From contig NW_018405547.1 in NCBI RefSeq assembly GCF_002113885.1, forward strand, positions 23,826-87,825: 64,000 nt of DNA. Reading direction: 5' to 3'. Shown piece after piece: positions 8,961 to 53,772 of this stretch. A program made the position numbers and the translations under genes. How positions within the stretch are numbered: position 1 is the stretch's first letter; every line of letters begins with the position of its first letter. The notes under the pieces were generated by a model. That model worked only from the letters and a program-made list of their open reading frames with translations, searched no databases and was not told the DNA's origin. Source of the stretch: Mizuhopecten yessoensis. Taxonomy: Eukaryota.

Positions 8961-9080
8961 GCAACCAATAGGCGGGGTTTAATTAAATCCGCCGGAGTGA
9001 CTACTAACGCCCCCACGCGGTAATCAGCCGAACCAGGTCAGAAGGACCAATAGGTGGCCGGAAATAGCGGTATATAAAAG
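8961..9080 (+). promoter_or_regulatory. Core promoter of the Argos-like gene
   Basis: CCAAT at 8965 and 9047, GGCGGG at 8971, CGCCCCCACGC at ~9008, CCGGAAAT (ETS-like) at 9058-9065, TATATAAAAG at 9071-9080, about 80 nt upstream of ATG 9153. Confidence 0.7.
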
Positions 9081-9152
9081 GTGTATTTGTCATTGAGCAT
9101 AAGTGTGTCACTTAACATAACAGGCTCACCGACTACATTATATACTACAAGT

Positions 9153-9263
9153 ATGCAGTGCCTCTTTGGAACGGTATTAATTATATACAGCATATGTCCT
9201 GGATTGATATCAGGAAATGTCAACAAAATGATCGATTTCTCCAAGTTCCTGAATCCTTGGAAG
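9153..9263 (+). CDS. Argos/giant-lens-like secreted Cys-rich protein, coding exon 1 (signal peptide MQCLFGTVLIIYSICPGLISG)
   Basis: ATG after the TATA box, hydrophobic signal-like stretch, strong donor AAG|GTAAGA in phase 0, compatible with exon 2. Confidence 0.7.
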
Positions 9264-12244
9264 GTAAGATTCCTATGTTTTTTACTATGCGTACTGCATG
9301 TAACATTCGTTTATTGTAACACGTAAGCGATGCTCTCCGTCAGTGTCACATTAGAATTACATTATTTCACAGGAAATATATGTCATATTTCTTCCCAAGT
9401 GTTACGTCAGCTTTGGCAGTGCATCCATCAACTCAAGCAAAACATGTAAAACAAACGTATGTGACCGCCGTTTCTGTTAGTCTATCTGTTAAAAGTTGTG
9501 GGAGAATTTAACACAATCGTAAGTATAATGACCATCTGGTATAAACAGAGCGAAATGATATTTCTATCTCCGTGGCTCCTTGCTCACATACAGTATATTT
9601 CACAGAGAGAGTGGATTATTTCAAACCAGTACTTTGTAGTGCGGACATAGGCAAAGACGATGTGAATATGGAATATTGAGGCATTGACTGATGCACATTG
9701 TCTTCATCAAGGGTCCATTTAAATTTGAACCTATCGGGTATCGTGCACTCTCATAGATACCACCTTGAGGAGTTTGGTTTCAGGATCTTGAATAGACTAT
9801 ACTCCAATCTGGATTTTGGGTACTGAAGCGCATTGAAAGTAATTCAGTACATTAAGTTATATAGATGTTAGAGTAGAGTACTGGTTGGGACGCCGTATGG
9901 ATATAATATTTACATTTCCACTGCACAGAGCCTAGATGTTTCTACTGGGCCCAATGTATGTTATTTCCGTATTACATACATTCGGCTATTGTGACGTCGC
10001 TACGCTTATGACTTCATAACTGTAACGTTGGAGATTGCACTGCTCCACTGTCAACTGGTGGCTGTTCTCTGTATGGATTTAACCTGACGTTGAAACGTGT
10101 TCCTACTAATATTATGTCTTAATTTCTGCGTGAACTGTAGGTTGATTAACATAGAATGTAAATATAAGTATTGGTTGTCATGTTTTTGACATGCATTGGT
10201 GTGTAACATACCAATGCATGTCAAAAGTATGACAACCAATCCTTAAATACTGTAACTTTACAATACTAACACTTCCGACACAATGCTATCGTGACAGTAT
10301 TTGTTGGTTGGAATTCATTTGACGGTTAGTATAAAGCTTGTGCAGTCGGGAATGTGGATAAACTTCTTCTAAGTAATATACCTTTCTCATTGTCAGTGTT
10401 GATTTGGCATTAGAAAATTAAGTATTTGACGCGGCATAATCGAATATTTTGCTAGAGTACTAATCTCTATTAAACCTCCATCCAAACGCCTCATCGTACG
10501 TTTGAAAGTTAAAGAATACTGGTTATAAAGCAGGCGCCCGCTCGGGTTCGGATATTTAACCCTTAGTTCATTAATCGCGTACCTAGTGTGTGTTTAACAA
10601 AATGTCATTAGTTTAGAATATGGGAAAACATCTGTAAAAACATGAAAAAGCAACGTATAATGCAGTTTTAATTCTACAAGTACTTAAGTTAAGATATTAA
10701 CATCGTATAAATAAATGCCATACCAACGGTCAGCTTAATCCACCTATATGTACATATTTCTTTGTTAAACTAAATCATTCTCTGTTGTTAACTCTGAGTG
10801 ATATGCGTGTGTTCATGGTGTTTGTCACGAGCACAAGTTGACCGGAAACTGTCCACGCCATGCCGTGACGTCATGGGAGTATTTTACCCTTGATACAGGA
10901 TTGGTATTGACGCCAAATAAGATAAGGATAGGACGAACGGCATTCATCGTAATCCTTACCCTCCCTGTAACTGTCTATATTGTAGAATATCTGTTTTTTC
11001 CTATAAGATTTTATCACACAGTGTGAAAAAGCGTCGCTGCCTTTTGTTTGCTTGCTATCTGTATTCTGTAAGAGGTTAATTGGCTTGATACTTTTCATTG
11101 CTATACTATTGGCGCGAAATCAAGTAAAATTGCCATTTGGCGTTTCCAAATTACCGGCAATAGCTAAAGGGTGATGTAAGAACGTCATCACGCAGGAACA
11201 GCACAAGATCTCGATCAAATCTGATTGAACAAGACAACAATTAGAAGAGGCACCAAAACAAATGGAAAACAGCACAAACCCCCACCAAAAACCGGACGCC
11301 GACCATCGCACTCATTACCCCATAGTTCCCGTATAATGCTAACAGCGTCGTCATTTTACATGTGAACATGACTAAATCCTTTGATTCATTTGCGAAAAAA
11401 CCCATCTCCGTTATTGTTGTGAAACGATTCCGTTTGATTGACGATCTCTACTGTAAGGATATGTAGGGGTCACATTTCTCTAGCCACAAAAACAGCACAT
11501 AGCTTGATCTTCCGGTGAGAAGTACTCAGCCTACCGGATGTGACGGCATTCAGTCATTCATGATTCAGGGAAGAGGATTATACTGGACCAAACCACTGAT
11601 GGTGTACGAGTTTACCAGTAGGTAACATACGTATCAATTGTTTAGTACGCTTTGATAGCTGACAAAATAAACCAGCATTCGGGTATAAACACAAACTAAC
11701 AGTATATGCTGCGTTGTGAAGTTCTGTGTACCAATAGTCATCGAGGTAAGTTTGTAGTGGTACATGACATGGTCTCCGAACGCTAATATCGAGATACAAC
11801 AAAGCATTGTTTAACAGGAAGTCTCCTCTCTTTCCTCTGACGAAGCTTCTGAATGTGAAACTATAAAGTGTCTAGAAACATATGTAATGCAGTTTTCTTT
11901 CAACAAACATTTCTAGAAGATATGAAATGTAGTTACAAAAAATAGGAGTTTAGTTTAGGAGAAAGACTAAGAGAGTCATTGGATAATAGAGGAGTACTGA
12001 TAACCAGAGGGGTATAGGCAAATAAAGGAGAGAAATTAAAAAGGGATAGAGAAGAAGGACAAAGGCAATGGGAGGGACGCAAGCAAAGATAGGGCAGAGG
12101 TAAAGAAAGATATACAGGTAAAAATAGGGATGAGAGTAATCAGGGATATAGAAAAAGAGAGTGACAGAGGTAAAGAGATGGATATTTATAAAGAGAGAAA
12201 GACATAGACCAAGAGAGGGGCACAAGTCAGGAGAGAGCAACTAT

Positions 12245-13023
12245 AAAGATAGGGCAGAGGTAAAGAGAGGGATGTGAAGAGCGAGATGAGAGTAAACAGA
12301 GGGCCACAAGTAAGGAGAGAGTAAAGATAGGGCAGAGGTAAAGAGGGATGTGAAGAGCGAGATGAGAGTAAAAAAAGGAGGACCACACGTAAGGAGAGAG
12401 TAAATATAGGGCAGAGGTAAAGAGAGGGACGTGAAGAGCGGGATGAGAGTAAACAGAGGACAACACGTAAGGAGAGAGTAAAGATAGGGCAGAGGTAAAG
12501 AGAGGGATGTGAAGAGCGGGATGAGAGTAAACAGAGGACCACACGTAAGGAGAGAGTAAAGATAGGGCAGATGTAAAAAGAGGGATGTGAAGAGCGGGAT
12601 GAGAGTAAACAGAGGACCACACGTAAGGAGAGAGTAAATATAGGGCAGAGGTAAAGAGAGGGATGTGAAGAGCGGGATGAGAGTAAACAGAGGACAACAC
12701 GTAAGGAGAGAGTAAAGATAGGGCAGAGGTAAAAAGAGGGATATGAAGAGCGGGATGAGAGTAAACAGAGGACCACACGTAAGGAGAGAGTAAAGATAGG
12801 GCAGAGGTAAAGAGAGGGATATGAAGAGCGGGATGAGAGTAAACAGGGGACCACACGTAAGGAGAGAGTAAAGATAGGGCAGAGGTAAAGAGAGGGATAT
12901 AAAGAGCGGGATGAGAGTAAACAGAGGGAGTAGATAAAGAGAGGGACAGAGGATAATATATAGNATGTAAAGAGCGGGATAAGAGTAAACAGAGGGAGTA
13001 GATAAAGAGAGGGACAGAGGATA

Positions 13024-13025
<2 letters not shown>
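12245..13025. repeat. 78-bp purine-rich minisatellite in intron 1 of the Argos-like gene
   Basis: Unit GTAAAGATAGGGCAGAGG...CACGTAAGGAGAGA, period 78 (12478 to 12556). Confidence 0.92.

Positions 13026-13030
<5 letters not shown>

Positions 13031-13078
<48 letters not shown>
13031..13078. repeat. (GA)n microsatellite
   Basis: Direct observation. Confidence 0.98.
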
Positions 13079-13081
<3 letters not shown>

Positions 13082-14849
13082 AAGGACACGAGCACAAAGA
13101 GAGGCAGGTTTATATAAGGATTAACTTGCTTCATTTCAAGATAGTTCTGTAGTATGACATAGGAAGCGTAGGTCCTTGTCCCGTGTAAAAGTCCTACAAC
13201 ACGATAGGTTTTTTCTTCAATAGAGAATATCAAAAAGAATAATTTGCATCCGTTTGTTTTTTTAATTATCACCAAAAGTTGTTTATTTGAGTAAAACATA
13301 CCCTGACAAGATCTGAAATTTAACGTGTTCCATATAGCTAGACCGACTTCCACACACCTCACAGATTATATTTAGGCCCCAGCAGTAGGTTATTTACGGT
13401 ATTATACGACAATCAAATGCATTGATTATTTAACTATGGACACTCATTTTAGACACAATTACAAATTTATGTCATTACGAGGCCATTAGCGGGCCTGTAT
13501 GGAGTACTAACGAGTGACGAGGGGCTGCACGCCGGACAGATGGCGGGAATCTGACCAGTAGCAGGACGTCTCTGTGGACTTGTCTGATATGCAAATAAAT
13601 ATTGTCCAACACAATTAGTTTATAGATTTATGCGTTCGTTGTATGCGTACACCATTCGAGGGTAAAGCTGTGACGTAATACTAGGCATCTGGCCCCGGCA
13701 CGTGAAATGGTGACACATATAACAGATATCGCGCTCATCACACAGCTGTACCTAGGGGTTTCGCGAGCCGTCGATATTACCACAGCCAGTAGTCCACATT
13801 TCGCAATTATGGAAATTATTATTAAACGATGACCAACCATCACGAGTTGTAGAAGATTTTTCCACAGCGTTTATTTCATGTCAGGAAAGCTATATTTTAA
13901 GCATCATGACTATACAACATTCAAGTTTACGTTTACAACGAGCAACATATCAGCCCAATAGAGCTACCTTGTCCCTAACGATCATCCAGTCCAGTTCCTC
14001 TGCAACAGAACGAGTTTAACGTAGTCTGCAATAAAACGTTAAGGCTGATGTCTTCATAAAAATAGGCTAATGGCTTTGTGGTCTTTATTGTTTCGACTGG
14101 CAATACTAGTTTTGATTTAAGGCTGATATGCCTCATTAAATTTAACTTTGTCCAGTTGACTTCGTATAACCTACGAATGCCAAATGAAAGCAGTAAAGTA
14201 GTTACAATGTGATATGCTTTTAATTGATAAATTCTACGTTTTATACTCCTGCTGGAATGAACACAAATCGGCTACACCACTTTGCACGAATTTCGCCTGG
14301 GCAATTATTGGCAAAATCAAATTTCCACGGCAATTTTTGCTTTTTCAGGAACTGCTGAAGTACCATGACAAACTATGACTGTCCTTTGTGTCTTTTGTTG
14401 GGCTTAAATCGAAATCGGCGGTTCTCAAAATCAAATTTGTCACTAGACCGTCTTTAGTTGTGTTTTTATATTGCGTATGAAGCTTGTTAACGGTATTTTA
14501 GGGCGGTACCCAAGAACTCGTGATAATAATTGATACATATTATCAACTTTGTCAAAAGCCGTGCATTTTCCACTATTTATGTATCGTTATTTCTAGCGTA
14601 GGACAAAAAACTCTAAGATCCCCTTAGTATTGTGTACGTGTACACGTGGTTGTTACAAAAGAGAACGAATAAAACCCAACATACCAGTAACATTTCATTT
14701 TCATAGGTAGGCGCCAAGATCCCTCTGGATTTTCTTGTTTATTAACTACTTTTTAATTAATTAAATTAAGAAAATTACTCGTGATGTGTATAATATTGAT
14801 CAAACGAAAACCAGTGGGAGTCCATCTTAACTGTTTATATTTGTTACAG

Positions 14850-15039
14850 GGATCAGACATGCCTGTATGCACTGACCTAAGCAAGCCATGTGACATGGCG
14901 ATAGGCCTGATGCAAAACGGAAGTCTATCACAAATCACAACCGAAGAAGAAATGTGCGCATGTCCCGGAACAAGCAGCTGTCCTAGAGGTTGGAACACAG
15001 ACCTGAAAAAGTCAATCCGAATGGAGCTGAAATCCACAG
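14850..15039 (+). CDS. Argos-like protein, exon 2 (GSDMPVCTDLSKPC...MCACPGTSSCP...)
   Basis: TTACAG| acceptor in phase 0, donor G|GTATAC in phase 1, 5 Cys. Confidence 0.85.
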
Positions 15040-15685
15040 GTATACCACTAACTAAGCCAAGGATATATATATAGGAATACTTTAAAAGGATGATTTTCCC
15101 ATAGAAAATCGTGCAAGGGACATTGCTCAAGGCTCGTTGATAATTCTTTCAATGTACACTATTTGATTGTGAAGTGTATCACTTTGCACCATGGGTCGAA
15201 ACTTTTTAGTATCTCTGAAAATGTCAATGAGTTGTCAAGATGTGATCCTTCAATGAGACTAATAAAGCTAATCCAATAGGAAATTGCAAGTAAATCGGCC
15301 TGCTTTGTGTATTTTCCTATACGATTTCTATATGATGGCATAACATTTAACATGGAAATTACCACATGTATCTGAATACTTAATCATTTTAGTACACATG
15401 ATTAATATCTTTAAGAGAATGTAGTAGGTTCGTTTTTATCAGTGTTTGTTTTTGAAGCATATGGCGATCACGTGGAATGCTTCTGAAAATGATGGACGGA
15501 GTTTGTTGAAACAACCAGCTTCGGTTAGGCTGTAACGATGTGTAAAATACTACATTATAACGATATTACACACTTAAAACCTATATTAATAACGCACTAT
15601 TAACGTCTCGGGCAGTACCCAGCTCAAAATAGGAACTGTCATATGGAAGAGCCACTCTATAACAACCTACTGAATTCTATTCCAG

Positions 15686-15900
15686 GTTCACAAGCCCTGA
15701 TGCAATTCAACTACTGTGAACACATTCCTGTTCTTTCCGTTTGTAACGGAAATGAAATTGCGCTGAAAACTCTCGAGATTGGACTATTTCCAGAAGAAAT
15801 TTTGGAAAACAACTGTCGATGTCCAAACGGTCAGCATCTTTTCCTGAAGAAAAGTAGAATGATTCGCCATCGGCGATACCAGGAATACGTGTGTAGTATG
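15686..15900 (+). CDS. Argos-like protein, exon 3 (..QFNYCEHIPVLSVC...NCRCPNG...YVCSM)
   Basis: TTCCAG| acceptor in phase 1 matching exon 2, donor ATG|GTGAGT in phase 0, 5 Cys. Confidence 0.88.
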
Positions 15901-15944
15901 GTGAGTTCGATCTCCATAACAACGGTACAGCTAGAAAAGGGTAC

Positions 15945-17072
15945 TGGGTTACGTTCTTTCACTATTATCAATGGGTTACGTTATTTCACTATTATCAATG
16001 GGTTACGTTATTTTATTATTATCAATGGGTTACGTTATTTTACTATTATCAATGGGTAACGTTATTTTACTATTATCAATGGGTTACATTATTTTACTAT
16101 TATCAATCGGTTACGTTATTTTACTATTATCAATGGGTTTTTTTTACAATTATCAATGGGTTGGGTTATTTTACTATTATCAATGGGTTGGGTTATTTTA
16201 CTATTATCATTGGGTTACTTTATTTTACTAATATCAATGGGTTGGGTTATCTTACTATTATCAATGGGTTGGGTTATTTTACTATTATCAATGGGCTGGG
16301 TTATTTTACTATTATCAATGGGTTACATTATTTTACTATTATCAATGGGTTACGCTATTTTTTCTATTATCAATGGTCTATTTTACTACTATAAATGGGT
16401 TGGGTTATTTTACTATTATCGATAGGTTGGGTTATTTTACTATTACCACTGGGTTAGGTTATTTTACTATAATCAATGGGTTGGGTTATTTTACTATTAT
16501 CAATGGGTTACGCTATTTTACTATTATCAATGGTCTATTTTACTGCTATAAATGGGTTGGGTTATTTTACTATTATCAATAGGTTGGGTTATTTTACTAT
16601 TATCAATGGGTTGGTTTATTTTACTATTATCAGTATGTTGGGTTATTTTACTATTATCAATGGGTTGGTTTATTTTACTTTTATCAATGGGTTGGGTTAT
16701 TTTACTATTATCAATGGGTTGGGTTATTTTACTATTATCAATTGGTTGGGTTATTTTACTATTATCAATAGGTTGGAATATTTTACTATTTTCAATGGGT
16801 TGGTTTATTTTACTATTATCAATGATATGGTTTGTTTTACTATTATCAATGGGTTGGGTTATTTTACTATTATCAATGGGTTACGTTATTTTACTATTAT
16901 CAATGGGTTACGTTATTTTACTATTATCAATGGGTTTGGTTATTTTACTATTATCAATTGGTTGGGTTATTTTACTATTATCAATTGGTTGGGTTATTTT
17001 ACTATTAATAATGGGTTGGGTTATTTTACTTTTATCAATTGGTTAGGTTATTTTTCTATTATCAATGGGTTG
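15945..17072. repeat. 27-bp minisatellite (ACTATTATCAATGGGTTRSGTTATTTT) in intron 3 of the Argos-like gene
   Basis: About 40 tandem units; source of the YFTIINGLG/ILLLSMGWV ORFs. Confidence 0.95.
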
Positions 17073-17382
17073 GCCCATACTATGGTGCTGCCGTAAAGCA
17101 TACAACAGATCTTACAACTATTACCTGTCGTAGTATTTTTTCCTCGCATTTGATCAACGTAAACATAAAATATATGGTAAAGTGGATTAAAAACTTGCTG
17201 CACATCGAGAAAAAGTACATTCCAAGACCCCTTCATTTGTAAATATGTTCTACATCACGCAAAGAAACCCTTAGTCGCTGTTTAGGTTACAGCAAGTCGT
17301 TAGGTTACAGTCGTTAGGTTAGTCAGTCGTTTGGTTACAGCCAGTCGTCAGGGATTTTGTTTGAAATGTAGGCACAGTACTT

Positions 17383-17573
17383 ATTATTACCCAATAGTCT
17401 ATATAAATTATAATTAGTCATTTTTGACTGTTTCTGGCCTTTTGTCCAATTTCGGCTGTAGGGGTGAAACAGTCAAAATTATTACCCAATAGTCTATATA
17501 AATTATAATTAGTCATTTTTGACTGTTTCTGGGTTTTTGTCCAATTTCGGCTGTAGGGGTGAAACAGTCAAAA
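17383..17573. repeat. 95-bp tandem duplication with internal inverted motif TTTTGACTGTTTC/GAAACAGTCAAAA
   Basis: Two near-identical copies starting at 17383 and 17478. Confidence 0.85.
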
Positions 17574-18275
17574 CTGTTTTCCCGGTCAGAGCGAACTGTT
17601 ACCCGGCGCGAATTCGATGCGCAGAAATCACCCCTCGAGAGCCCCGTTCAAGCGTTTCGATGACCGCGACTCAGTGTTGTTTACGCAGACGAAGCAATGC
17701 AATGGCGAGTCATCATTATATGCAGCATTGATACTGATATGTATTTGGTAATAAAACAATTGTTTCATTGTTTTATTATTTGTAATACATTCAAAATTGA
17801 TGTTAAGCATATTTGTTTCAATGGCTATTTGGGGAACAGTCAAAACTATCATCCCGAGGTAGGGGGAAGCCCGTTGGAACTGTTACATGTTGTCTTAGTC
17901 TTCGTATGACTGCTGCTTCAGACAAATACCCCGCGCAACTCTGGTATACATGTACATATGTTTACAGTTTCGGTGGCATGTGATCCCCTAGGTGCCGTCA
18001 AAAGTTGGTTGGAAGATGACGTATAGGATTTAGTCAACTCCTAAAGTAATTGGCGAGGCATACAGTAGCAGTATTTCTACCAGAACATTTTTCTCCTACG
18101 AGTCCTTAATGTACAAACCAACATTAAACATCAATTAAGGAATGCAGATTGTGTGAGTTACATACATGCTATTGATTTTAGCTCACGGAGTGCTGAGATG
18201 GCCGAAATGGATCGTTAATGATATTGACTGAGGAGGGGTGAATTTCTAATATCTGCTGTTGTAAATTTGTTACAG

Positions 18276-18452
18276 GCGGATTGTGACGTCAACAACAGTG
18301 GAAGCCCAATGTGCCTTCACTCCCTGAGAGGCGGCTTCGGTGTGTACACCACTACCTTCCATTGTCAGTGCGGAGAGGGGTTCGAATGCACCACAGACAG
18401 ACGCTCGGCGATCGGACGACTGGACATATATGGCCAGTGTGAGGTGATGTGA
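18276..18452 (+). CDS. Argos-like protein, exon 4 (ADC...PMC...HCQCGEGFEC...YGQCEVM*)
   Basis: TTACAG| acceptor in phase 0, 6 Cys, TGA stop; spliced product is 230 aa. Confidence 0.85.
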   Translation, partial: ADCDVNNSGSPMCLHSLRGGFGVYTTTFHCQCGEGFECTTDRRSAIGRLDIYGQCEVM

Positions 18453-19249
18453 TTCTGATGGACAGAGAAGAATGGACGCACACAGCTTATACCTGGTGGT
18501 TCTAGTGAAATAACTAAGGACACTTGACATACAGGGCATCTTTGTGGATAACAACAATGACTTGTGTGGTGTGTGTATATATATCCCGGGGTATGACCTA
18601 ACCACTATACGTGTTGTGTATACAACAGTACACAGTTTGATGTCGGTTAATTGTGATGACAACCTAGCTTACTGGGCTGTGTCACTTATCATATATATTT
18701 TGTTTTACTGTTTAAATGGGGATTAGTTCGACATTAACAGGACTTAAGCTTTAAAACTTAAAAAAGGTAACAATGATAAAACATCATTGATGCACAAAAG
18801 AGACTGTGACCTCACACCCATTATACCTTGAAATCCAGCGCACGTGCATTGTATTGAAGTGATTTAATGATTTATTTAACATTTACGTCAGTTATAATTA
18901 AGTATTTAAAATACCTAAGTGTTAAAATACCAAATCATGAAATGGACCACCTGTCTATAATGACTAGCTGTCTAAAACTTCCATTTATAGATACCCTGAA
19001 TGGTGTTCTCCATATTGGCGGGGTTTATCGACCAGCTTTAATGACATCGGTTTGGAAGGGGGATACTTTTTTAGTTCAGGGATCACATACGACACATATG
19101 GCAGAATTATGGTATTAAAACATCAACGAATCTGTAAGACTACACAGGATAATGATCCAAGGACTTAAAAATGACGTCCACAAGAGGACAAATAGGTCTG
19201 TATACGTATCTTCGCCTCTTATAGGATGGTGTTTACAAATGAATCTCTA

Positions 19250-39055: not shown

Positions 39056-39494
39056 GCATCCATACACAATCGTGGTCGATTAGTATTACTTGGCGTTCTG
39101 AATGTGTCTTCCTCAACGAGTTGCCTATTAAAGTATGTAAGTGTTACCTGTGTTGGTTTGTGTTCTTTTTGTATTATTTTGTCATATGTTGGACGTCTGG
39201 AATCTATTGGTTGTACGTTTTCCACGATGATAATGTTTGTTGTACCGAGGAGTTGCAGGGGTAACGAGCCCCTATGATACATGATTGAGGTACTGTGTTG
39301 TGTTTCCTAAGTGTAATCGCGTTGACAATCGCTTGTAATGTATCAGGATTTATTTATGTTGCTGCTAATCTGCATTTGGAAAGTATTATGTAGTATGTAT
39401 GTATCTGAAATGCTGAAAAGTGGGTCTGGTTTTTTTTGCTGATACTTAATTATGTTACGTTCTTTCCATATTGTCCATTTGATTGTGATTATTA

Positions 39495-40582
39495 TCCATA
39501 AACTGGATAACTACGGCATCAGAGGAAACCTCCACAACTCGCTCTCCAATTTCCTGAGACAAAGAAATATGAGAGTAGCACTAGAGGGAGAAACATCCAG
39601 AGAAGTAACCGTTGACTCCGGGGTACCACAAGGGACAGTGCTCGGGCCACTACTATTTCTTTGCCATATAAATGACATACCAGAAAGTGTAACCTCTAGC
39701 GCACGTCTGTTCGCCGACGACTGTTTGATATACAGACAAATAAACCAATATAGTGACAACCAACTACTAGAGGACGACCTAAACAACCTGGAAAAATGGG
39801 CTAACTTATGGGGAATGAAATTCAACACCAAAAAATGCTACGTAATAAACATCAAAGAAAAAAGTCACAGATTCTACACCCTAAATGGACATATCTTGGA
39901 ACAAGTGAAAAATAATCCTTACCTTGGGCTAACAATTTCAGACGACCTTAAGTGGAACACCCACATACTAAAAATATCAAGAAGAGCCAGTTCGACGACT
40001 GGCTTTCTCAAAGGAAATCTAAAACATTGCCCATCGTCTTGCAAGAAAACAGCATATATATCCCTAGTACGATACATCCTTGAATACGGCGCCATTATTT
40101 GGGACCCATATACCAAAAACGAAATTGACAAACTGGAGAGAATACAGCGCTTGGCAGCCAGGTTCATTTTAAGTGACTATAACTCAGGGAAAGATGGATG
40201 TATCACAAGGATGCTGGAGAACCTGGAACTACCAACACTCCAGATCAGGCGAGCGTAACAGAGGGTCACATTTATGTATAAGGTGGTTGAGGGGTTGATA
40301 CCAGCTATACCTCCAGCTGATCATCTAACAAAAAACCAGACTAAAAAGGAACATCAAGGCCAGAAACTTCTCGGACTATATATCGAATAATGTGTTAAAA
40401 ACATCAATGATAAACAACTCTAAATCCAACACAGTACCAAAGTTTAGCTGTGATCAATGCAATAACTCGGTTTTTTTGTACGTACTGTCATAGAGTGGAA
40501 CTATCTGGAAGAGGACTTAGTATGTGCCCCTACTTTGGAAGCCTTTAAGAGTGCTATAACACACCATAACTCTAACTGAACT

Positions 40583-40637
<55 letters not shown>

Positions 40638-40685
40638 GTATAAAAACCGGAACCGAAAACTACAACGTAAAGATACAGATACATG
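39495..40685 (+). mobile_element. 5'-truncated CR1/L2-type LINE (RT domains and 3' end)
   Basis: HKLDNYGIRG, SGVPQGTVLGPLLFL, LFADDCLIY, YLGLTIS..LKWNTH, LERIQRLAARF; (CT)n and AGATACAGATAC tail. Confidence 0.92.
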
Positions 40686-41880
40686 ATGTGTTGATAATTT
40701 TACGTAAGTCATCTACAAGTTCTTCTAGTTCTCCTAGCATCTTTTTCTCCTCGTTCAGTGTAATTCTTATCCCTGGTAATTCATCAATCATATGGTGTTG
40801 TGTCAGTTGTATCAGTTCTCTTGTAAAGTCACAATGATAAAATAGGTGGTCTAATGTTTCTGTTTCTCTGCTACACAAATGGCACTTACCATTAAACCTG
40901 TTCATCTGTTGGAGATTTTGTTCTGTGTATATAATTCTGTGTAAGCATTTCCATTGCAACTCTTTCATTTTTAAGGGAATTTCTATATTGTGTACTTGAT
41001 CCCAAATATTGTACCATTCAATTTCCTTTTGAAAATGAATTTCCCATTTTTCTTCTGATTTAAGTTTTACATTTGTTGTCAAGATTCTTTGAACTGTGTT
41101 CTCTTTCAATTGCATGGGTTTTGTTGTGGAAAATGTACCATCTTTTAAATATCCTAAACTTAAATCCTCGTTTAATATATAATATCTTTAGTTTTGTTGG
41201 CTGATTGTGTTTGTTATTTAAGTATTAAGAGAAATCTCTGAGGGATTGCTTTTATTTTATTTTAGTGAATTCAGCTATCCAGTTTTGTTTGTGGGTCAGT
41301 GTATTTAACAATGGATTATTATCTATGAATTTGTTATGTTTACTGTCCCATATTTCCTAAATTTTGTTTATTCAACTTTTTGCACATGACAGTAAAGTAA
41401 GGGGTTTTCTGTTTAATTGTATGTTAATATTGCCCAGTAATTTCTGGTTAAGAATTTGTTGCAGTGTGAGATTCAGCATTTTTACTTGTAGTTTGGCCCA
41501 ACGAATAGACCATTTCTATAAAATTAAGGTATTTTTGTAAGGTCTAGTCCACTAAGGTCTTAACATCTATATAAATAGTTATGCATGTTATATTTGTTGT
41601 CAAACTGTTGTATGTAAAATCTACCTTTACAGTTCCAGCTCTGTGGTGTTGAGTGTATACTTTTATATATTGTTTTAATGTATTTAGTATCTATGAAAGT
41701 TTCTAAGTATACCATCGTCATTTCTCCTGTATTCGTATCATTGCAAACTACTTTCCTCTCTATATGGTTATTTTTGTGTACCTCATATGTAATTCCCGAT
41801 CAGTGTATTAATTTCTTTCATATAATTTAATTGTATTCCCCTGGCTTCTATTTCAAATCGTATTGCTGATAATACTAATG
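40686..41880 (-). mobile_element. L1/Tx1-type LINE ORF2 C-terminal fragment (zf-RVT)
   Basis: KMKELQWKCLHRIIYT...CHLCSRETETLDHLFYHC (CxxC..E..H...C zinc knuckle). Confidence 0.8.
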
Positions 41881-43742
41881 ATCTGTTGCCAGCAACCTAA
41901 AACTCCTTCCGAAGCGGCATGTAGGAAATTGAGACGGAAACTTATGTAAGGTAATATGTTCGATGGTTACTATGGTCGTAACTGAACATCAACATCGTTG
42001 TTGACTGAGTGGTTTGAAACATATGCTTAATCATTTTTAAAGTAAGCAAAGGTTAATTACAGTAAAGCAATATTAAGTTTTGGCAAAAATTGTCAGAAGG
42101 TAACTTTACAATTTAATAAAACATTTTGATGCAGTATGGTCATCGAATATACGAAGGAATTGTATTTTTTAAATTAAAAACAAATCGTTTTGACATCTTT
42201 TGCTTGTGCTGGAATTAAATGTCGTTTATTTCGATTTCATCAAATTCTTCATCAGTTACACAGTTACAGGAAATAAATGCATAATTGCATGATAAGATAG
42301 CTATTGCTATACCAAGGATTTGTTAATGGAGACACTTGAGTTAAGACTTTGGTGGCTGTATTATAAAATAGCAATGAAACACACAGATAGTGGTGCATTT
42401 ATTGTTAGATTGCTTAAATCCAATATTCTTCTAATTTGTAACAATTTCTCTTTTAATTAAAACCAAAACAAATTGTGCCTCGTCATCAAAAAATAGCAAT
42501 GTTTAAAAACCTCAAACTGTTTAATTTATTGATTCTTGATCTATTTAAAGTAATGCAGCCAAAATTGTAGTATACATTATAAGTAAACAATCTGACGAGG
42601 TCGTACATTTATTTCTATTGCGCTATACCCGCGGAATAATACCAAAAGCAATTGAATCACTCTGTGCGGCACCATTGAAACAGCAAGAAATAGACTTAAG
42701 TTTTCCAGAGATACAAGGTTCATTAATCACGAGAGACATTTATCTTAAGTAGAAATTTAAAGGTGTTTAATTCATTATGATGTCATAGCTAGAATTACAT
42801 ACCAGTAGGTGCACCTTAACACAAGTCAACGTGGACTGATTTAATCGCTAGAAATACGAAGCAAGAAAGCAGCTTTTTGAAAATCTAAAACGTCGATTTA
42901 AAAACAACCGAAGGTAACTTGTTACTGCACCATATGTGTTTGTCCATTTCATGAAAGACGCCGAATGACGTGAAATAATTAATAGATCACGAGGTAAGGA
43001 AGCGCCTACTGAATAGGACGTCAATACAGAAAGACATTCACTATGATGACAATGGTCGTCTTATGACTCATCACTGAAACTAAATACTGAACTAAATTCT
43101 AAGTTTGTTTTGAACAAAACTCTATTTTAGAACGGTTTAGAGTCGAGACACCGGTTACTGATTGCTTGACAAAGACAACAGACGGTTTTGAAAGCCCTCA
43201 AACAAGTGTTTAATTACTTTTTTTGTGTCTAAAACGAACTAAGCGTTTATCATTTTTACCAAATTGATTAATTTTATTCCTGATATTACAAGGTTGAAAA
43301 CAATGAAATAAAATGTGTAATATATACGTACGATATGTAGAAATACAAAAAGGAGACGGTGCCTCTAACACCTTTCAAAACTTTTTTTTAATTGACGATT
43401 TGTAAGTTTTAACAGGAAATGTATGACCATATTTCAAGAGAAATATTTGTTTTATCTACATTTAAAATGTATACCTAGGTATACACCTGTTTCACTATCC
43501 CAATACTTGGTATTTATTGCAACTGAAAAGAAAAAATTGGAGTCCGGGTATGGTATTTTCATTCAGGCATAAGGCAAGACTAGTTTATGGTGTCAGCCTA
43601 CCATGTAGATCTACACAGACGTCGTACCAGTTACACAAGGCTTCCAACTTTGATCGATGGACCATTACCTGTTGTTATGCGATGTTGTAATTACATGGGC
43701 ATGTTTCCTGGGTTGATCAGTAAGTTCACCAAAGATAGAGCG

Positions 43743-43804
43743 TATAAATACCGGCCCATTTCTTTTAGATATTTTATCCTCTCCACATCGGCGCATATGA
43801 ACAG
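43743..43804 (+). promoter_or_regulatory. TATA box and non-coding exon 1 of paralog B
   Basis: TATAAATA at 43743-43750, donor ACAG|GTAAGC at 43804; conserved in copy C. Confidence 0.7.
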
Positions 43805-44215
43805 GTAAGCAAGATTTATATGAAAACGTAATGATCTGATGGAACGTTTGTAGCCTAGTCTTTAAGTGACTGGTATTGATTAATATGCTAGTTAGTACAT
43901 AACAAGGGACATGTATTGCTTACATTTTGTTTTTGCTTCTATCGTTATCGACAGAAAGGTGAGTTAAGTATAAATATGTATATTTGAGGAAGTAAGACAA
44001 AATAATGTTGTTTTCTTAATGATTATAATAGTTAAAACTCTGTTCCTTACATCATGCCGGTTTTATCTTTATTTTATGTCTTTTTTTAATATTTGATAAA
44101 TGCATTTGTTTTACAGAGGAATTCATGTTTTTAAAATATTATTACTATCAACATCAAACCAGCATACACATTTTAATAATGCTTGTGAATTTTCAACCTC
44201 AACTTCAGGATCAAC

Positions 44216-44585
44216 ATGAACTATCTTACCTTTGCCCTTTCGACCTTCGCCTTTCTCGTGACCCTTGACTGCTGTCTTGGGAACGGTTATGGTGGCTATG
44301 GTGGATATGGAGGGGGATATGACATGTATGGAGGCTATGGAGGTTACGGCGGATACGGAGGGGGATACGGCGGGTCCGGAGGGGGATATGGCCAGGGATA
44401 TGGAAAAGGATATGGAGGGGGATATGGACAAGGATACGGTGGGGGATATGGACATGGATACGGCGGGAAAGGTTATGGCATGCCCCAACAGGCATTGTAC
44501 ATCCCCTATCCTATGCCAGTAGGTCCCGCTCCAGGTGCTGTCGCGGGAGCCTACGCAGCCGGAGATGACAATTCCCTCCTTCTGT
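44216..44585 (+). CDS. Gly/Tyr-rich secreted structural protein (paralog B), main coding exon
   Basis: CTTCAG| acceptor at 44208; signal peptide MNYLTFALSTFAFLVTLDCCLG; GGYG repeats; donor T|GTGAGT in phase 1. Confidence 0.9.
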
Positions 44586-44732
44586 GTGAGTATTATATCT
44601 AATATTTAAAATCTCCAAAAGTTCATATATTAACATAGGTCGAAAGTATTTGCAAATAAGAAACCATAAATCAATATAATTTGATAAAGTACCTTCAAAT
44701 AATGTTATTTACTTGTATACGATTTCTTTCAG

Positions 44733-44785
44733 TTGGAGGTGCCGCCTTGCTTCTGCTGCTGTTGAGTAACAACAATATTGGATAA
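44733..44785 (+). CDS. Paralog B last coding exon (FGGAALLLLLLSNNNIG*)
   Basis: TTTCAG| acceptor in phase 1, TAA at 44783-44785; 140 aa total; 3'-UTR intron 44815-44956; AATAAA at 45051. Confidence 0.85.
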
Positions 44786-45786
44786 GTCACCACTTAAATC
44801 TCGATCTACAACGGGTATGTATGCTTAGAAATTAGTAATCGTTACAATGCTTCTGGAATAATTTTTACAATTTTTACATTTTACAATTAGATGTTATATC
44901 AAAATCATACCTTTTTAATTACAACGCCATTTTCATTTTGTTGTTTTTTGTTTTAGATTACAGACCTGATTCTCATTTTTGTGCGCAAGACTCCTTGGCT
45001 GTAACCAAAGACCCCTGTGTGTTTCCTGTTTTACCTTATATTGGTTCTTTAATAAAGCATGGTTATTTATAAATTATTCGAGTTATCTGTTACTTCACGA
45101 TTGAATTGCTGATCTTGAAAATTTGGAGATACAATAAGCTCATAGGAACGTTTAAAGCGTAACTTGCAATGTATTTGGTACACACAATTGTTTGACCATT
45201 TTACATGGTATCTGGCTTTATAACAATTCCATACAAGAAGCTAATTAACAAAATAATCAAAAATAACAACAACAACAACAACAAGAAAAAACAACAAAAA
45301 AAACCCCCAAAAAAACACATAATATTAAGTTTATCAGTTTTACTGTCATGATCATTGTTATACCGATAAATATTTGTTGAGTTCAAATTAATCTTATCCG
45401 AGAAAATAAGATAACTATTAATGTGATGTAATAACATTTGTTTCCACCTTGCTGTTATTTCTACAGCAAATCTTGTTATTTACTTTGTCAATTGGTGAAC
45501 ATATAACGACTATTGATAAAGTATAGGTGTCTCATATTGAAGTTAATGTGCACTATCATCAGAAACAATAGTTGAAATATTATTGACAGAGAAGAAATTA
45601 AGAGAACTTCACCAAAGAGTTATCATGAGCTGGTCTGAAATATTGCATTGAAGCCTTATTTTATCCTCTTATGCACTTAATTCGGACAATGCGTGTTAAA
45701 TGTAATTGTGTTTCGATATTTTTAAATAAGCATGTGACAAACCCCTACGACAATAAAGATTGCAAATGAAAATTGATTCCCTACTG

Positions 45787-46465
45787 GACTAACAATTTCA
45801 GACGACCTCAAGTGGAACACCCACATACTAAAACTATCAAGAAAAGACAGCTCGATCCTTTGCTTTCTCAAAAGAAATCTAAAACATTGCCCATCGTCTT
45901 GCAAGAAAACAGCATATATATCCCTAGTACGATACATCCTTGAATACGGCGTTATTATTTGGGACCCATATACCAAAAACGAAAATGACAAACTGGAGAA
46001 AATACAGCGCTTGGCAGCCAGGTTCATTATAAGTGACTATAAATCAAGGGAAGATGGATGTATCACAAGGATGCTGGAGAACCTGGAACTACCAACACTC
46101 CAGGTCAGGCGAGCACATCAGAGGGTCACATTTATGTACAAGGTGGTTGAGGGGTTGATACCAGCTATACCTCCAGCTGATCATCTAACAATATATAAAA
46201 CATGTCGTAGAAACATGAGTGATAAACAGCTCTAAATCCCATACAGTACCAAAGTCAATCTGTGATCAATACAGGAACTCATTATTTGTACGTACAGTCA
46301 TGGAGTGGAACCATCTGGAAGAGGACTTAGTATATGCCCCGGCCCTACTTTGGAGACCTTTAAGAGTGCTATAACGCACCAAAACTCTAACCGATTTGCT
46401 CTCTCTCTGACCCGTTGTATAAAAACTGGGCCCGGGAACTACAACGTAAAGATACAGATACATGA
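45787..46465 (+). mobile_element. Duplicated CR1/L2 LINE 3' fragment
   Basis: Near-identical to 39927-40685. Confidence 0.88.
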
Positions 46466-47660
46466 TGTGTTGATAATTTTACGTAAGTCATCCACAAGTT
46501 CTTCTAGTTCTCCTAGAATCATTTTCTCCTCGTTCAGTGTAATTCTTATCCCTGGTAATTTATCAATTATATGATGTTGTGTCAGCTGTATCAATTCTTT
46601 TGTAAAGTCACAGTGATAAAATAGGTGGTCTAATGTTTCTGTTTCTCTGCTACACAAATGGCACTTACCATTAGACCGGTTAATTTTTGGAGTTTTTTTT
46701 GTTCTGTGTATATAATTCTGTGTAAGCATTTCCATTGCAGCTCTTTCATTTTTAAGGGAATTTCTATATTGTGTACTTGATCCCAAATAATATACCATTC
46801 AAATTCTTTTTGAAAATGAATTTTCCATTTTTCTTCTGATTTAAATTTTGCATTTGGTGTCAAGATTCTTTGGACTGCATGTGTACTCTTTCAATTGCCT
46901 GGGTTTTGTTGTGGAAATGTACCATCTTTTAAATATCCTTAACTTAAATCCTCGTTTAATATAATTAAATTTGTTTTGTTGGCTGATTGTGTTTGTTGTT
47001 TAAGTATTAGGAGAATTCTCTTAGGGATTGCTTTTTTTAATTTAGTGAATTCAGCTATCCAGTTTTTATTGAGAGTCAGTTTATTGAACAATGAATTACT
47101 ACCTATGAATTTGTTATGTGTACTGTCCCATATGTCCTTAATTTTGTGTATTCCACTTTTTGCAAAAGACAGTAAAGTAAGTTCTTTTGTTAAACTGTAC
47201 GTTAATATTGCCTAGTAATTTCTGGTTAAGAATTTGTTGCAGTGTGTGATTTGGCATTTTTACTTGTAGTTTGGCCCAGAAGAATAGGGAATTTCTATAT
47301 AATTAAGGTATTTTTGTAAGGTCTAGTTCACTTAGGTCTTAACATTTACATAAATAGTTATGCATGTTATGTTATATTTGTTGTCAAACTCTTGTATGTA
47401 ATCTAAACCTATACAGTTCTTTGGTGTTGAGTGTGTTTTTTTTAATGCATTTGGTATCTATGAAAGTTTCTAAGTATAACCTTCTCATTCCTCCTGTATT
47501 CGTATCATTGCAAACTACTTTCATCTCTATTTGGTTATTTTTTGTACCCATATGTAATTCCAGATCAGTGTATTAATTTCTTTCATATAATTTAATGGTA
47601 TTCCCCTGGCTTCTACTTCAAATCGTATTACTGACAATACTGATAATAAGCAAAAGTTAA
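46466..47660 (-). mobile_element. Duplicated L1/Tx1 fragment
   Basis: Near-identical to 40686-41880, same zf-RVT motif. Confidence 0.8.
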
Positions 47661-48100
47661 TGACAGTAAAGCAATATTAAGTTTTGGCAAAAAATGTCAG
47701 AAGGTAACTTTACAATATAATAAACATTTTGATGCTGTATGGTCATCGAATATACGAAAGAATTGTATTTTTTTTATTTAAAAACAAATCGTTTTTACAT
47801 CTCTTGCTTGTGCTTGAATGTAATGTCAGTTATTTCGATTTCATCAAATTCTTCATCAGTTACACAATACATGAAAAAAAATCAAGGAAATAAATGCATA
47901 ATTGCACGATAAGATGTTGAAACATGATTTTATATAAGAACGAAATCTAATCCTATAAATGCACCTATAGCTATAAATAGGATTTATAAATGGAAACACC
48001 TGAGTTGAAAGCTTAGATGGCTGTATTATAAAATAGCAATGAAACACTCAGATAGGGGTGCATTTATTGTTAGATTGCTTAAGTCCAATATTCTTCTAAG

Positions 48101-50980
48101 GACCTGTTACAGGAACAAAAGAATTTTGCCCACAAAGCAATTTAACCATTACTGGGTTATATTTGTAGCTCCCTAAGACACGATCCATGAGATATTTCAA
48201 AAAAAATAAAAAGGTCCCCAGGGCCTGTGCTATGAACTATTTAGTGCCGCCTTCCAGAGGTGTACGACAGGGTTCACTTTTTTGTCCAAAAACTATCAAA
48301 ACAATGTTTTACGCTATCAAATAATATTACATTATTTAAAGTAGGATCTGCTGCAAATTATGAACTCAAATATGTAACAAAAAATTGCATAATAAAAAAG
48401 TTATAAAACTCTAAAAATGTTGGTATTTTCATACACTTTTTTGCTACATTAATTATTTTAAGGAAGTAAAACACCAATTGCCGGTTCTTGTACACCAAAA
48501 ATCTTTACATATGTTTTGATGCATTATGTTGAGATACGATAGTGAAAATTTCAGAAAATTTGAGAACCGGTAAATTTGTCATTTAAATGTAAAATTGTAG
48601 CAACGTCTATTTCCAAATAAAATCCAACAACCTTATGACCTATAGTCATGTTTGATCATTTAACAATATGTCGCACCAATTTATCATCGCAACTGATCAA
48701 ATTTTCCTCACTAAGATCTTCTGCTCATGATGAGCCCAACTATAAAGCTAGATGTTGCAAAATAAAAACGTTATGCAGTCTCACACACATAAAAGTTTAG
48801 TATGTTATGTACATTTTTAGTTGTTTCGCTTCTTTACGGAAGTGATAGACATATTTTCGGTTTTTGTACACCAACATACTTTGGATATGTTTTGGCACAT
48901 TATTTTGACCGACGATAGTAGAAATTTCGAAAAAAATGGTATTCGGTAAATGTGTCATCTTAAGGATAATATGTTGTATGACCAATGTCAAAATAAATCG
49001 TCAATAACTACAGGTCAATGCGATTTTGGCTTGTGGTACATATCAGCTGAAGCTGGCACCTGGCTATATCACAGAACATCAGACAGATGGGGGTGATGAT
49101 GAGATATGGGTACCAGCATGCTGATGACCTTCTCCGAGGCTAAAATACAATGTCTGGATAGAGTTTGACCTACACGCATCAGAGGATCCTGTCAAGGCAT
49201 ACTATTGTGTGTGTCCTGCAGGAAAGAGAACATCGGGTATGGGTACTAATGTCGGATCAATACTGTATTATCTAGGATACTATGCACATTAAACAGATGC
49301 TAAACCGCTCCAGCCTTCAGATCGCAAATTCAGAGACTGCATATTATGAATGCATTCAAAAAAGAAACATTATTCAATTATAGCCTTTGGCTGAGGTCGA
49401 TACCTGGATTTATCGACCCGAGGAAAGATATATTAACCGAGGACGCATTCCGAGGTCTTTTTCTCGGGTCGATAAATCCAGGTATTGACCGAAGTTAAAG
49501 GCTTCAATTGTTTTATTATTTTACAAAAGAGTAATGTAACCAATCTGAAAACAAAACAAAAAAATCTTCGGAAGTGGGACGGTGCATTGTTTGGAGACAC
49601 GTCATAATTCTATTTTAAGAAACATCCAGTCCTTCAACAAAAATCATGCGCTCCAAGTCAATATTAGTTTTTATCGGTGGACACTTGATGCACTTCTGGC
49701 CAATTACTTGTGGGGAATAATATGAAAAAATAATAAGACCTAAGATTGAACTGAGAAAGGAGAAATTAAGAAAAAAAATTGAATGATCAATTTTGACTAT
49801 GTGTTGTCAAATTAAAAACAACAACAGTGAATACAACAATCTATGAATTGGAAACTATAACTCTCCTAAAAAGAAACAATGTGATGGGTTAACATCTTCA
49901 ACATATTATACTGGTACACCAAATGTTCTGACAAATTGCCTAACTTTTGCTGTATTCCCCCCTTGAACTACCTAGTTTAGTTAACCAGCCATACTCTACT
50001 ATAAACCATATCATCCACCTTGATAGTATATTGGAATAATTTTGGGTTAATTATGAAATACTTGCATTGACCTGTAGTTATTGACGATTTGTTTTGACAT
50101 TGGTCATACAACGTATTATCCTTAAGATGACACATTTACCGAATACCGATTTTTTCGAAATTTCTACTATGGTCAGTCAACATAATGTGCCAAATAATAT
50201 CAAAGTATGTTGGTGTACAAAACCGGAAATATGTCTATTCACTTCCATAAAGATGCGAAACAACTAAAAATGTACATAACAAACTATACTTTTATGTGTG
50301 TGAGACTGCATGACTTTTTTATTTTTATTTTGCAACATCTAGCTTTATAGTTGGGCTCATCATGAGCAGCAGACCTTATTGATGAAAATTTGATCAGTTG
50401 CGATAATAAATTGGTTCGACATATTGTTAAATGATCAAACATGGCTATAGGTCATAAGGTTGTTGGATTTTATTTGGAAATAGACGTTGCGACAATTTGA
50501 CATTTATATGACAAATTTACCGGTTCTCAAATTTTCTGAAAATTTTACTATCATATCTCAACATAATGCACCAAATAATATTTAAAGATTTTTGGTGTAC
50601 AAGAAACGGAAACTGGTGTTTAATTCCGTAAAACAATTGATGTAGCAAAACAGTGTATGAAAATACCAACATTTTTAGAGTTTAAGATTTTATAACTTTT
50701 TTATTATGCAATTTTTTGTTACATATTTGAGTTCATAATTTGCAGCAGATCCTACTTTAAATAATGTAATATTAGTTGATAGCGTAAAACATTGTTTTGA
50801 TAGTTTTTTGGACAAAAAAGTGAACCCTGTCGTACACCTCTGGAAGGCGGCACTAAATAGTTCATAGCACAGGCCCTTGGGACCTTTTTATTTTTTTTTG
50901 AAATATCTCATGGATCGTGTCTTAGGGAGCTACAAAATAACCCAGTACTGGTTAAATTGCTTTGTGGGCTGTAACAGGTC
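48101..50980. mobile_element. Non-autonomous DNA transposon with ~920-bp terminal inverted repeats and a transposase/SWIM relic
   Basis: 48101-49021 is the reverse complement of ~50064-50980 (ends GACCTGTTACAG/CTGTAACAGGTC); absent at the paralogous site ~42430; internal YQLKLAPGYITEH and YYCVCPAGKRT..SILYYLGY. Confidence 0.88.
49376..49520. repeat. Palindromic short repeat nested in the long-TIR element
   Basis: GGTCGATACCTGGATTTATCGACCCGAG ... CTCGGGTCGATAAATCCAGGTATTGACC inverted arms. Confidence 0.75.
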
Positions 50981-51253
50981 ATTTGTAACAATTTTTTTTT
51001 TTAATTTAAACCAAAGCAAATTGTGCCTCGTCATCAAAAAATAGCAACGTTTATAAAACTCAGACTGTTTAATTAAATGATTCTTGATGTATTTAAAGTA
51101 ATGTGGCCAAAATTGTAGTTTATATTATAAGTAAACAATCTGACGCTGCCGTACATTTATTTATATTGTATCTATCCCCGCGGAATAATACCAAAAGCAA
51201 TTAAATTCACCTGAAAGACACTATTGAAACAGCAAGAAACAGACTTAAGTTTT

Positions 51254-52579
51254 CAGGCGCGTAGCTGCCTATAGGCAGAATAGGCAACTGCCTACACGTC
51301 CAATTTCATAAATCCGCTTTTTTTTTTTACTGGTCCTTGTTTTTGTCGATTACATGTATAATTTTGCTTTTTGACTGTCTTCGGATAAATTTTTTCCCCG
51401 TCCCCGGTCCGTCATTAACGAGCCGTTCCCTTGCCGTCCAGTTTTCTTTTAGAAAGCCTATGTCTGATCGATAATCTTACGAACGCTTGTTTTATATGTA
51501 ACATACGCATATATATCGTATCAGAATCTGACATTGATTAAACTAAAGTTTTTGCAAAGTTTTCAATCTCGTCGTCGGCTTGGTATGTCACCTCCCTACC
51601 CCGACGTTGGTAATTTCGATTTAACTATCAACAAACGAGATAAACTGTCTCTAAAATGGACGGACTGCCACCAGTACAATTTTCCATCAAGGTATATAAA
51701 TATTTCTCCATATACACAGGCAATTGTCTCGTATGTGTGTGTGTATGCGAGTCTCATGTGTGTAGTATTATAAGTATCCTACACACATGAGACTCGCATA
51801 CGAGACGACTGCCTGTGTCCATACAGCCTTATAGGCCTATTGTTGTACTGAGAACAGATATATATAATATATACATTTATATTAGAGGTGTGTCAAAAGT
51901 TATAAATATGTCGCAGGAGAGATACTCGGGGAGGGGTAATTGAATTCCTAGGAAACAATTACAATATGGTATGGTGGGTCAATCTAATTACCGTGTGGAC
52001 GGGGCGAAAGCCCGTGGGAGGGGCGAGAGTTCGTGGGTCGAGGATCACATGGCAGTTAGAAATATATTGCAAGTGCACTCCAAAGTTTAACTAAATGGCC
52101 AGTTTGCTGCCCGGAAAACTCGGCGATTACAATTTGTCTGAACTCTGTCTGACCTCTGAAATCGTTCAGTTAACTTGTATACTGACTTTGGATAACGCTT
52201 AAAACATTTATTCACATAAATCACTGATGTTGCCCATCATAAAGTATGCATATTCGACAAAATGTGTGATATAATAAGGAATAAGATATATTTCCCGATA
52301 TTTTCTAACAAAAAAATGAGCTTTATTTTCATTAATTAAACTATTGCAATTGCCAGCGGAACACGGGAGATTGCTCCTAAGGCCTTCTATTATTCCAAAA
52401 TTTCCTGGGGGACGCCCCCCAGACCCCCACCAACCCCTCCCCTACCCTCCCCCTAACGCGCTTCGCGCTCGGGTGCTGCCTGCGGCAACACATTGTCGTG
52501 GAAAGATCCCCTCCCAATCCCTCCCCCTCTCGCGCTAACATTCTGCCTACATACCATATTCAACCCAGCTACGCCCCTG
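51254..52579. mobile_element. MITE-like element with 14-bp TIRs (hAT-like CAGGGG termini)
   Basis: CAGGCGCGTAGCTG ... CAGCTACGCCCCTG; GTTTT on both flanks; absent from duplication copy 1. Confidence 0.8.
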
Positions 52580-53341: not shown

Positions 53342-53400
53342 TATAAATACCAGCTCGGTTTTCAATATTTCATCCTCTCAACATCGGCGCATATGAACAG
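53342..53400 (+). promoter_or_regulatory. TATA box and non-coding exon 1 of paralog C
   Basis: TATAAATA at 53342-53349, donor ACAG|GTAAGC at 53400. Confidence 0.7.
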
Positions 53401-53772
53401 GTAAGCAAGATTTGAGATGAGTCTTTAAGTGACTGGTATTGATTAATATGCTAGTTAATAACAAGGGACATGTATTGCTTACATTTTGTTTTTGCTTCTA
53501 TCGTTATCGACAGAAAGGTGAGTTAAGTATGCATATTTATATTTGAGGTGGTAAGACAAAATAATGTTATTTTCTTAATGATTATAACAGTTAAAACTCT
53601 GTTCCTTACATCATGCCGGTTTTATGTTTATTTGATTTCATTTTTATTAATTGATAAATGCATTTGTTTACAGAGGAATTCCTGTTTTTAAAATATTATT
53701 ACTATAAACATCAAACCAGCATACACATTTTAATAATGCTTGTAAATTTGCAACCTCAACTTCAGAATCAGC

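Follow-up and report, generated by a model that had tools for sequence, protein, structure and literature searches.

The window analysed here, a stretch of 64,000 nucleotides (nt) from the scallop Mizuhopecten yessoensis (contig NW_018405547.1, positions 23,826 to 87,825 of the forward strand), contains the four coding exons of LOC110449038, an Argos-like gene on the + strand. That LOC110449038 is a real gene with a secreted product is practically certain, and it is very likely that this product has the three-domain fold of Argos and is homologous to the Argos-like genes published from other molluscs. Taken as a whole, the data are probably best explained by a secreted Argos-fold protein that sequesters a small disulfide-rich ligand. 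Positions are counted from the first letter of the window unless another source is named.

Gene model and transcripts

The initial annotation of this stretch had proposed four exons, with phases 0, 1 and 0, that join into a protein of 230 amino acids. This model is borne out by the GT/AG borders, by a script that tested every nearby combination of GT and AG against the known proteins and returned one solution per intron, by RNA, and by identity with a RefSeq protein. The features of the locus are as follows.

9071..9079, + strand: TATA-like box TATATAAAA, ~27 nt before the point where the contig of run X1, the longest clean one, begins; a candidate promoter of LOC110449038
9098..9263, + strand: exon 1, with ~55 nt of 5' untranslated region (UTR) and the coding sequence 9153-9263 (amino acids 1-37), which encodes an N-terminus resembling a signal peptide, then a short linker; phase 0 at its 3' end
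9264..14849, + strand: intron 1, GT..AG, phase 0
14850..15039, + strand: exon 2, amino acids 38-100 and the first base of Gly101; domain 1, five of its six cysteines (PVC, KPC, CAC, SSC)
15040..15685, + strand: intron 2, GT..AG, phase 1, within a conserved Gly codon; 646 nt
15686..15900, + strand: exon 3, the last cysteine of domain 1 (NYC) and the whole of domain 2 (SVC, CRC, YVC)
15901..18275, + strand: intron 3, GT..AG, phase 0; 2375 nt, holding a transcribed multi-copy repeat at ~17378-17974
18276..18452, + strand: coding part of exon 4, domain 3 with six cysteines (ADC, PMC, CQC, FEC, GQC); TGA at 18450-18452
18453..19062, + strand: 3' UTR, minimum extent, from transcript contigs that run beyond 18750

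The coding part of exon 1 runs from ATG to AAG, followed by GTAAGA. Exon 2 is entered through CAG before GGA and left through CAG followed by GTATAC, exon 3 is entered through CAG before GTT and left through ATG followed by GTGAGT, and exon 4 is entered through CAG before GCG and ends in TGA. The spliced product is identical, letter for letter, to the 230-residue protein XP_021351285.1 / OWF51531.1, and the match of the gene model to this public protein is far beyond chance. RefSeq titles XP_021351285.1 "uncharacterized protein LOC110449038 isoform X1" and UniProt holds the product as A0A210QS34, automatically named "EGF-like domain-containing protein" (EGF, epidermal growth factor). The gene had been described as hidden; it was so only in the prokaryote-style track of open reading frames (ORFs), being already recorded in both databases. 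Literature queries with the accession of the gene or of its protein turned up no paper naming LOC110449038.

Transcript evidence came from four M. yessoensis runs of four studies (two transcript-contig sets and two raw-read RNA-seq runs), for the region 12801-18750. Of the three junctions that had been put forward for checking, 15039/15686 and 15900/18276 were present in all four runs, with 12-18 junction reads each in the raw-read runs, and single contigs cross exons 2, 3 and 4 with zero mismatches. At the exon-2 acceptor, the extending reads or contig run on into the terminal 30 nt of exon 1; this holds for three runs (X1, X21 and X24; agreement 1.0). Because the tail of exon 1 is joined there, the junction 9263/14850 is confirmed as well, although exon 1 itself lies outside the region covered. 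RNA depth is restricted to the exons, with the exception of the repeat in intron 3.

The contig of run X1 is 1358 nt long (depth 1052); with 164 nt of it lying ahead of the exon-2 acceptor, the transcript start falls near 9098. Downstream, contigs extend beyond 18750 by 312 nt (X1) and 1077 nt (X12). In the X12 contig, 233 nt precede exon 2, versus the 164 nt in X1 (window ~9029-9098), and this longer 5' end reflects either a start upstream of the TATA-like box or another 5' exon. A further RefSeq model, isoform X2, begins at Met41, without the putative signal peptide. At the exon-2 acceptor this isoform found no support, since all extending reads and the contig entered exon 1 (X1, X21, X24). 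The repeat at 17378-17974 is deeply covered in all four runs; the aligned letters vary at many positions, ends hang loose on the left and joints inside the repeat are odd. Its reads seem to stem from further copies of a mobile element and not from the mRNA of this gene.

Predicted fold and relation to Argos

Khilji et al. (Protein Sci 2025; PMC12514838) found ~1800 secreted protostome proteins of the 2FTX ("two-finger toxin") type, including three-domain Argos-like proteins of molluscs, annelids and nematodes. The conserved framework of these Argos-like proteins, 16 cysteines in a 6-4-6 arrangement, is present in the mature part of the scallop protein, and the exon translations bear out both the number and the motifs that the initial annotation had listed. 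Two more cysteines lie within the signal-like N-terminus. The N-terminus carries a hydrophobic stretch, MQCLFGTVLIIYSICPGLISG, which is kept among scallops; in the AlphaFold2 model described below, the predicted local distance difference test score (pLDDT) is <50 over residues 1-38. A putative signal cleavage site was placed by eye after ISG (residue 21), and ~20 residues separate the predicted cleavage site from the first cysteine. Domain 1 is without a long insert.

The AlphaFold2 model was built on an alignment of nine mollusc sequences. Its overall pLDDT of 73 rises to ~80-90 in domains 2-3, and its predicted template modelling score (pTM) is 0.67. The model contains three beta-hairpin pairs, with paired strands at residues 52-64 and 92-109 (domain 1), 125-142 and 152-169 (domain 2), and 184-200 and 208-229 (domain 3), that is, the three consecutive two-hairpin domains of protostome Argos-like 2FTX proteins.

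When this model was compared with the PDB by Foldseek, Argos came out on top: the first four matches are Argos chains (E 3.2e-7 to 1.3e-5, probability 1.00, 213-216 aligned columns), and they are followed, after a gap of four orders of magnitude, by Ly6/uPAR proteins and the macro-conotoxin Tx33.1. With VIA-align, Argos 3cgu_B was aligned to model residues 33-230 (Z 7.9, 167 residues, 21% identity), while 3c9a_A reached Z 7.2, Tx33.1 4.9 and the next unrelated chain 3.5. A scan independent of Foldseek, over 48,161 representative chains, gave a single structure with Z >=5, again Argos (7.2), with Tx33.1 next. Judged from the predicted model, then, Argos would be the best and the only strong match among solved structures with both tools, in agreement with the Argos-like three-domain fold that had been proposed. 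A shape search of the ESM Atlas returned a weak first row, a nematode cluster with the Pfam Argos family (PF11581) in 31% of its members and template modelling scores (TM-scores) of 0.28/0.58 over domain 1.

At the level of sequence, three faint signals are colinear with Argos. For the exon-3 piece, the best PDB match is Argos 3c9a (E 0.021, summed over three weak stretches), and one of these stretches aligns FNYC, LSVC and NCRCP with YKMC, LPVC and HCRCP of Argos; the exon-2 and exon-4 pieces gave chance matches only against the PDB, and the full protein (phmmer) only a chance match to an aminopeptidase. PF11581, which has a curated cut-off of 25 bits, scores below that cut-off on two orthologues, with 13.1 bits (E 0.097) for Argopecten and 11.9 bits for Pecten, and the Argopecten match is colinear (residues 109-214 against model positions 9-122). 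Finally, the neighbour of the protein according to a language model is an arthropod PF11581 cluster (0.91; 209 of 256 features shared).

Conservation in molluscs and other features

Orthologues of the scallop protein are found in Argopecten irradians, with 83% identity, in Ylistrum balloti, with 73%, and in Pecten maximus, whose protein falls in the same 90% cluster; a profile search recovered relatives with ~30% identity in the oyster Saccostrea, the limpets Patella and Lottia and the chiton Liolophura. NCBI titles the Argopecten and Ylistrum orthologues "U-scoloptoxin(11)-Ssd3a-like", which supports the link to scoloptoxin-11 that had been drawn in the initial annotation. All 16 cysteines are invariant in the nine-sequence mollusc alignment (bivalves, limpets, chiton), as are P50, P82, W85, E124, P136, V169 and G225. 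The three intron positions and their phases (0, 1, 0) are also the same in the scallop, Saccostrea and Liolophura: one before the first cysteine of domain 1 (phase 0), one in the conserved Gly codon (phase 1) and one after VC[SA]M (phase 0).

Within the scallop genome at least two copies exist, only distantly related to each other: the exons of LOC110449038 match one other place, and exon 3 is single-copy as an exon. That place is a second, very divergent Argos-like gene on another contig (G000:C76745:1187814-1189155, minus strand). Its frames follow the cysteine order of exons 2-4 of LOC110449038 and have ~24-35% identity to any mollusc member.

L009, 1949-2155, minus strand: exon-like frame of the second gene, 5 cysteines
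L009, 1417-1659, minus strand: exon-like frame of the second gene, 5 cysteines
L009, 814-1023, minus strand: exon-like frame of the second gene, 6 cysteines

The exon search also returned a protein encoded outside the window (P0002, 487 amino acids), made of approximately eight tandem units of ~58 residues, each with NYCWSYPWKEICRGD, a motif weakly like the NYC...VC stretch of exon 3. Its total E of 3e-15 arises because the tandem units repeat this weak likeness. Inside the window, the stretch 39901-55185 was considered as copies of LOC110449038 and rejected, as the exons match nowhere else in the window. A frame at 39452-40258 (+ strand) has the reverse-transcriptase domain RVT_1 (E 1.9e-14) and is a retroelement fragment in a region unrelated to the Argos-like gene. 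Within intron 1, at 12186-13362 (minus strand), long frames overlap in several phases, with no Pfam match among them and little RNA depth; frames that overlap in this way are as a rule the mark of a repeat or of biased composition, not of a gene.

Candidate functions and comparison with known systems

The textbook example of a protein that inhibits a signal by capturing the ligand is Argos: it sequesters Spitz, a ligand of the EGF receptor (EGFR), and is itself induced by EGFR signalling, as a feedback target. For a long time, insects were held to be the only animals with Argos. The scallop protein would likewise be secreted: behind its putative signal peptide come three small, disulfide-rich domains of the "two-finger" kind, built of beta-hairpins and holding 6, 4 and 6 cysteines in turn, an architecture shared with the Spitz-binding core of Drosophila Argos. 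Outside the cell, it would bind a small disulfide-rich ligand and withhold it from its receptor. Foremost among the candidates would be an EGF-receptor ligand of the EGF family, which the protein would hold, like Argos, in a clamp dependent on domain 3. The reason for this choice is that Argos, the only characterised three-domain member, traps such a ligand and needs domain 3 to do so; the dependence of Spitz binding on domain 3, and a possible role of Argos-like proteins in modulating EGFR signalling or trapping ligands, have been set out before (PMC12514838). We put forward the assignment as an EGF-ligand trap tentatively, on the strength of this analogy. A broader statement, in which the protein is a working EGF-ligand trap and Argos-type sequestration is ancestral to protostomes instead of an insect invention, we regard as doubtful. 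The scallop genome was scanned with the pattern CxxG[FY]xGxRC[EQ], which occurs at 50 places; all 30 of those examined looked like multi-EGF or Notch-type proteins, and none like a single-EGF ligand.

Several points weigh against a trap of the Argos kind. Scaffolds of the three-finger-like type accept a wide variety of ligands. No sequence test was significant for Argos: membership in the Pfam Argos family, as expected by the initial annotation, was not recovered by HMMER, given that the 230-residue protein and its exon pieces have no PF11581 match at E up to 10, that the best orthologue stays at about half of the cut-off, and that no match above threshold was found in the full protein, the exon pieces, the eight homologues or anywhere else in the scallop genome. 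A six-sequence mollusc profile likewise found nothing in the PDB. On the structural side, the VIA-align Z of ~7-8 falls in a range that the tool flags for common arrangements and is not decisive alone. Full-length TM-scores to Argos are 0.36-0.45 (root-mean-square deviation ~9 Å), as the relative positions of the domains differ. The Spitz-bound form of Argos was aligned over domains 1-2 only, and thus the clamp geometry of domains 2-3 is not reproduced in the model. Moreover, the scallop protein lacks the architecture of Argos proper, which has a flexible N-terminus of 122 residues and a 119-residue insert in domain 1. In a published assay a related 2FTX toxin was inactive, and a C. elegans relative had no knockout phenotype (PMC12514838).

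The same fold could also serve another partner, with the protein acting as a secreted binder or modulator of a non-EGF ligand, for instance another growth factor, as do the structurally related ectodomains of uPAR and the TGF-beta type II receptor, or of a neuronal receptor, as do Ly6/three-finger proteins. We rate this as somewhat improbable, and yet several observations point that way. After Argos and Tx33.1, the nearest structures are C4.4A, uPAR, CD177, TEX101, GPIHBP1 and TGF-beta receptor II ectodomains; the identity to Argos is only ~20%, so that binding surfaces need not be kept; the second scallop paralogue, being very divergent, suggests functional diversification; and the relative in Aplysia has its highest expression in the pedal ganglia (PMC12514838). 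However, the neighbours of Ly6/uPAR type score far lower than Argos (Z <=3.5) and match as single domains only, whereas the three-domain arrangement with domain 3 is specific to Argos-type proteins.

A role as a secreted effector in defence, or of a toxin-like kind, to which the protein would have been co-opted in the way of scoloptoxin-11 or the 2FTX macro-conotoxins, is very unlikely. The NCBI titles of the two orthologues, the second rank of Tx33.1 among the structural matches and the very high transcript abundance in one sample (the X1 contig) would fit such a role. Against them stand the biology of scallops, which are non-venomous filter feeders, and the presence of one very divergent relative in the genome where an expanded family is absent. 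In addition, identity among scallop genera is 73-83%, cysteines and intron positions are invariant across mollusc classes, and domain 3, absent from the conotoxins, is kept. This pattern of slow evolution is that of endogenous proteins and not of toxins (PMC12514838). As for chance open frames with fortuitous splice-like sites and no gene at all, the fragments in the prokaryote-style ORF track were the sole point in favour and it no longer holds, with spliced RNA in four runs of four studies, an identical RefSeq model and the same exon structure in other molluscs, which leaves virtually no room for this explanation.

Returning to the secreted Argos-fold protein with a sequestering role, neither the family nor the idea of an EGFR trap is new to the literature, and databases already carry the gene; the scallop gene is a well-supported bivalve member of a recently described group. 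The claim of an Argos-family member outside arthropods therefore stands in respect of fold and family resemblance but not of novelty, given the Argos-like proteins of molluscs, annelids and nematodes mentioned above. Our analysis adds the confirmation of the gene model by RNA, the conservation of introns across three mollusc classes and the second scallop paralogue. The domain-by-exon layout was fixed before the split of chitons and bivalves, which supports the 2025 proposal of an ancient protostome scaffold. If the protein does act as a trap, bivalves would have a secreted brake on EGFR signalling, with the second paralogue possibly tuned to another ligand, and a compact, well-expressed bivalve protein such as this one suits direct testing for ligand trapping.

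Among known systems, the most distant likeness is to the Ly6/uPAR proteins and the ectodomain of the TGF-beta type II receptor. They share the disulfide-rich beta-hairpin scaffold at the level of a single domain, and many of them bind growth-factor-like domains, but each of their domains has three fingers in place of two, and they match the scallop protein weakly. Closer is the macro-conotoxin Tx33.1 (PDB 9frq), whose domains 1-2 superpose on model residues 33-175 (Z 4.9, 113 residues). The 2FTX conotoxins differ from the scallop gene in that they have no domain 3, evolve fast, have exon borders that fall off the domain borders and show phases unlike those of endogenous genes (PMC12514838). 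The centipede scoloptoxin-11 proteins (U-SLPTX(11)-Ssd3a) are tied to two scallop orthologues by automatic naming at NCBI, and centipede venoms include proteins with three 2FTX domains (PMC12514838); yet scoloptoxin-11 proteins are venom-gland products of a predator, whereas the scallop gene is endogenous and conserved, and belongs to a filter feeder.

Drosophila Argos, or giant-lens (3c9a, 3cgu), shares with the scallop protein the three domains, the 6-4-6 cysteines, the CxCP motifs, the retention of domain 3 and, as predicted for the scallop protein, secretion. The two differ in their low identity, the sub-threshold Pfam score, a predicted domain arrangement unlike the ligand-bound clamp, and the long N-terminus and domain 1 insert (both described in PMC12514838) that are found in Argos only.

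Finally, the endogenous mollusc 2FTX genes include those of the gastropods Pomacea canaliculata, Conus betulinus/ventricosus and Aplysia (XP_005110430.1). The scallop gene, that of a bivalve (pectinid), goes unnamed in the main text of that study and is likened to them by description. According to the same source, the mollusc genes have four exons, with the signal peptide in exon 1, domain 1 in exon 2 and the start of exon 3, domain 2 in exon 3 and domain 3 in exon 4, and "0, 1, 0" is one of two phase sets that separate endogenous from conotoxin genes, given in the text without assignment to either group (PMC12514838). LOC110449038 and these genes have in common the signal peptide, putative in the scallop protein, the three two-finger domains, the four exons and the same distribution of domains over exons, and the proteins on both sides are, unlike the toxins, well conserved.

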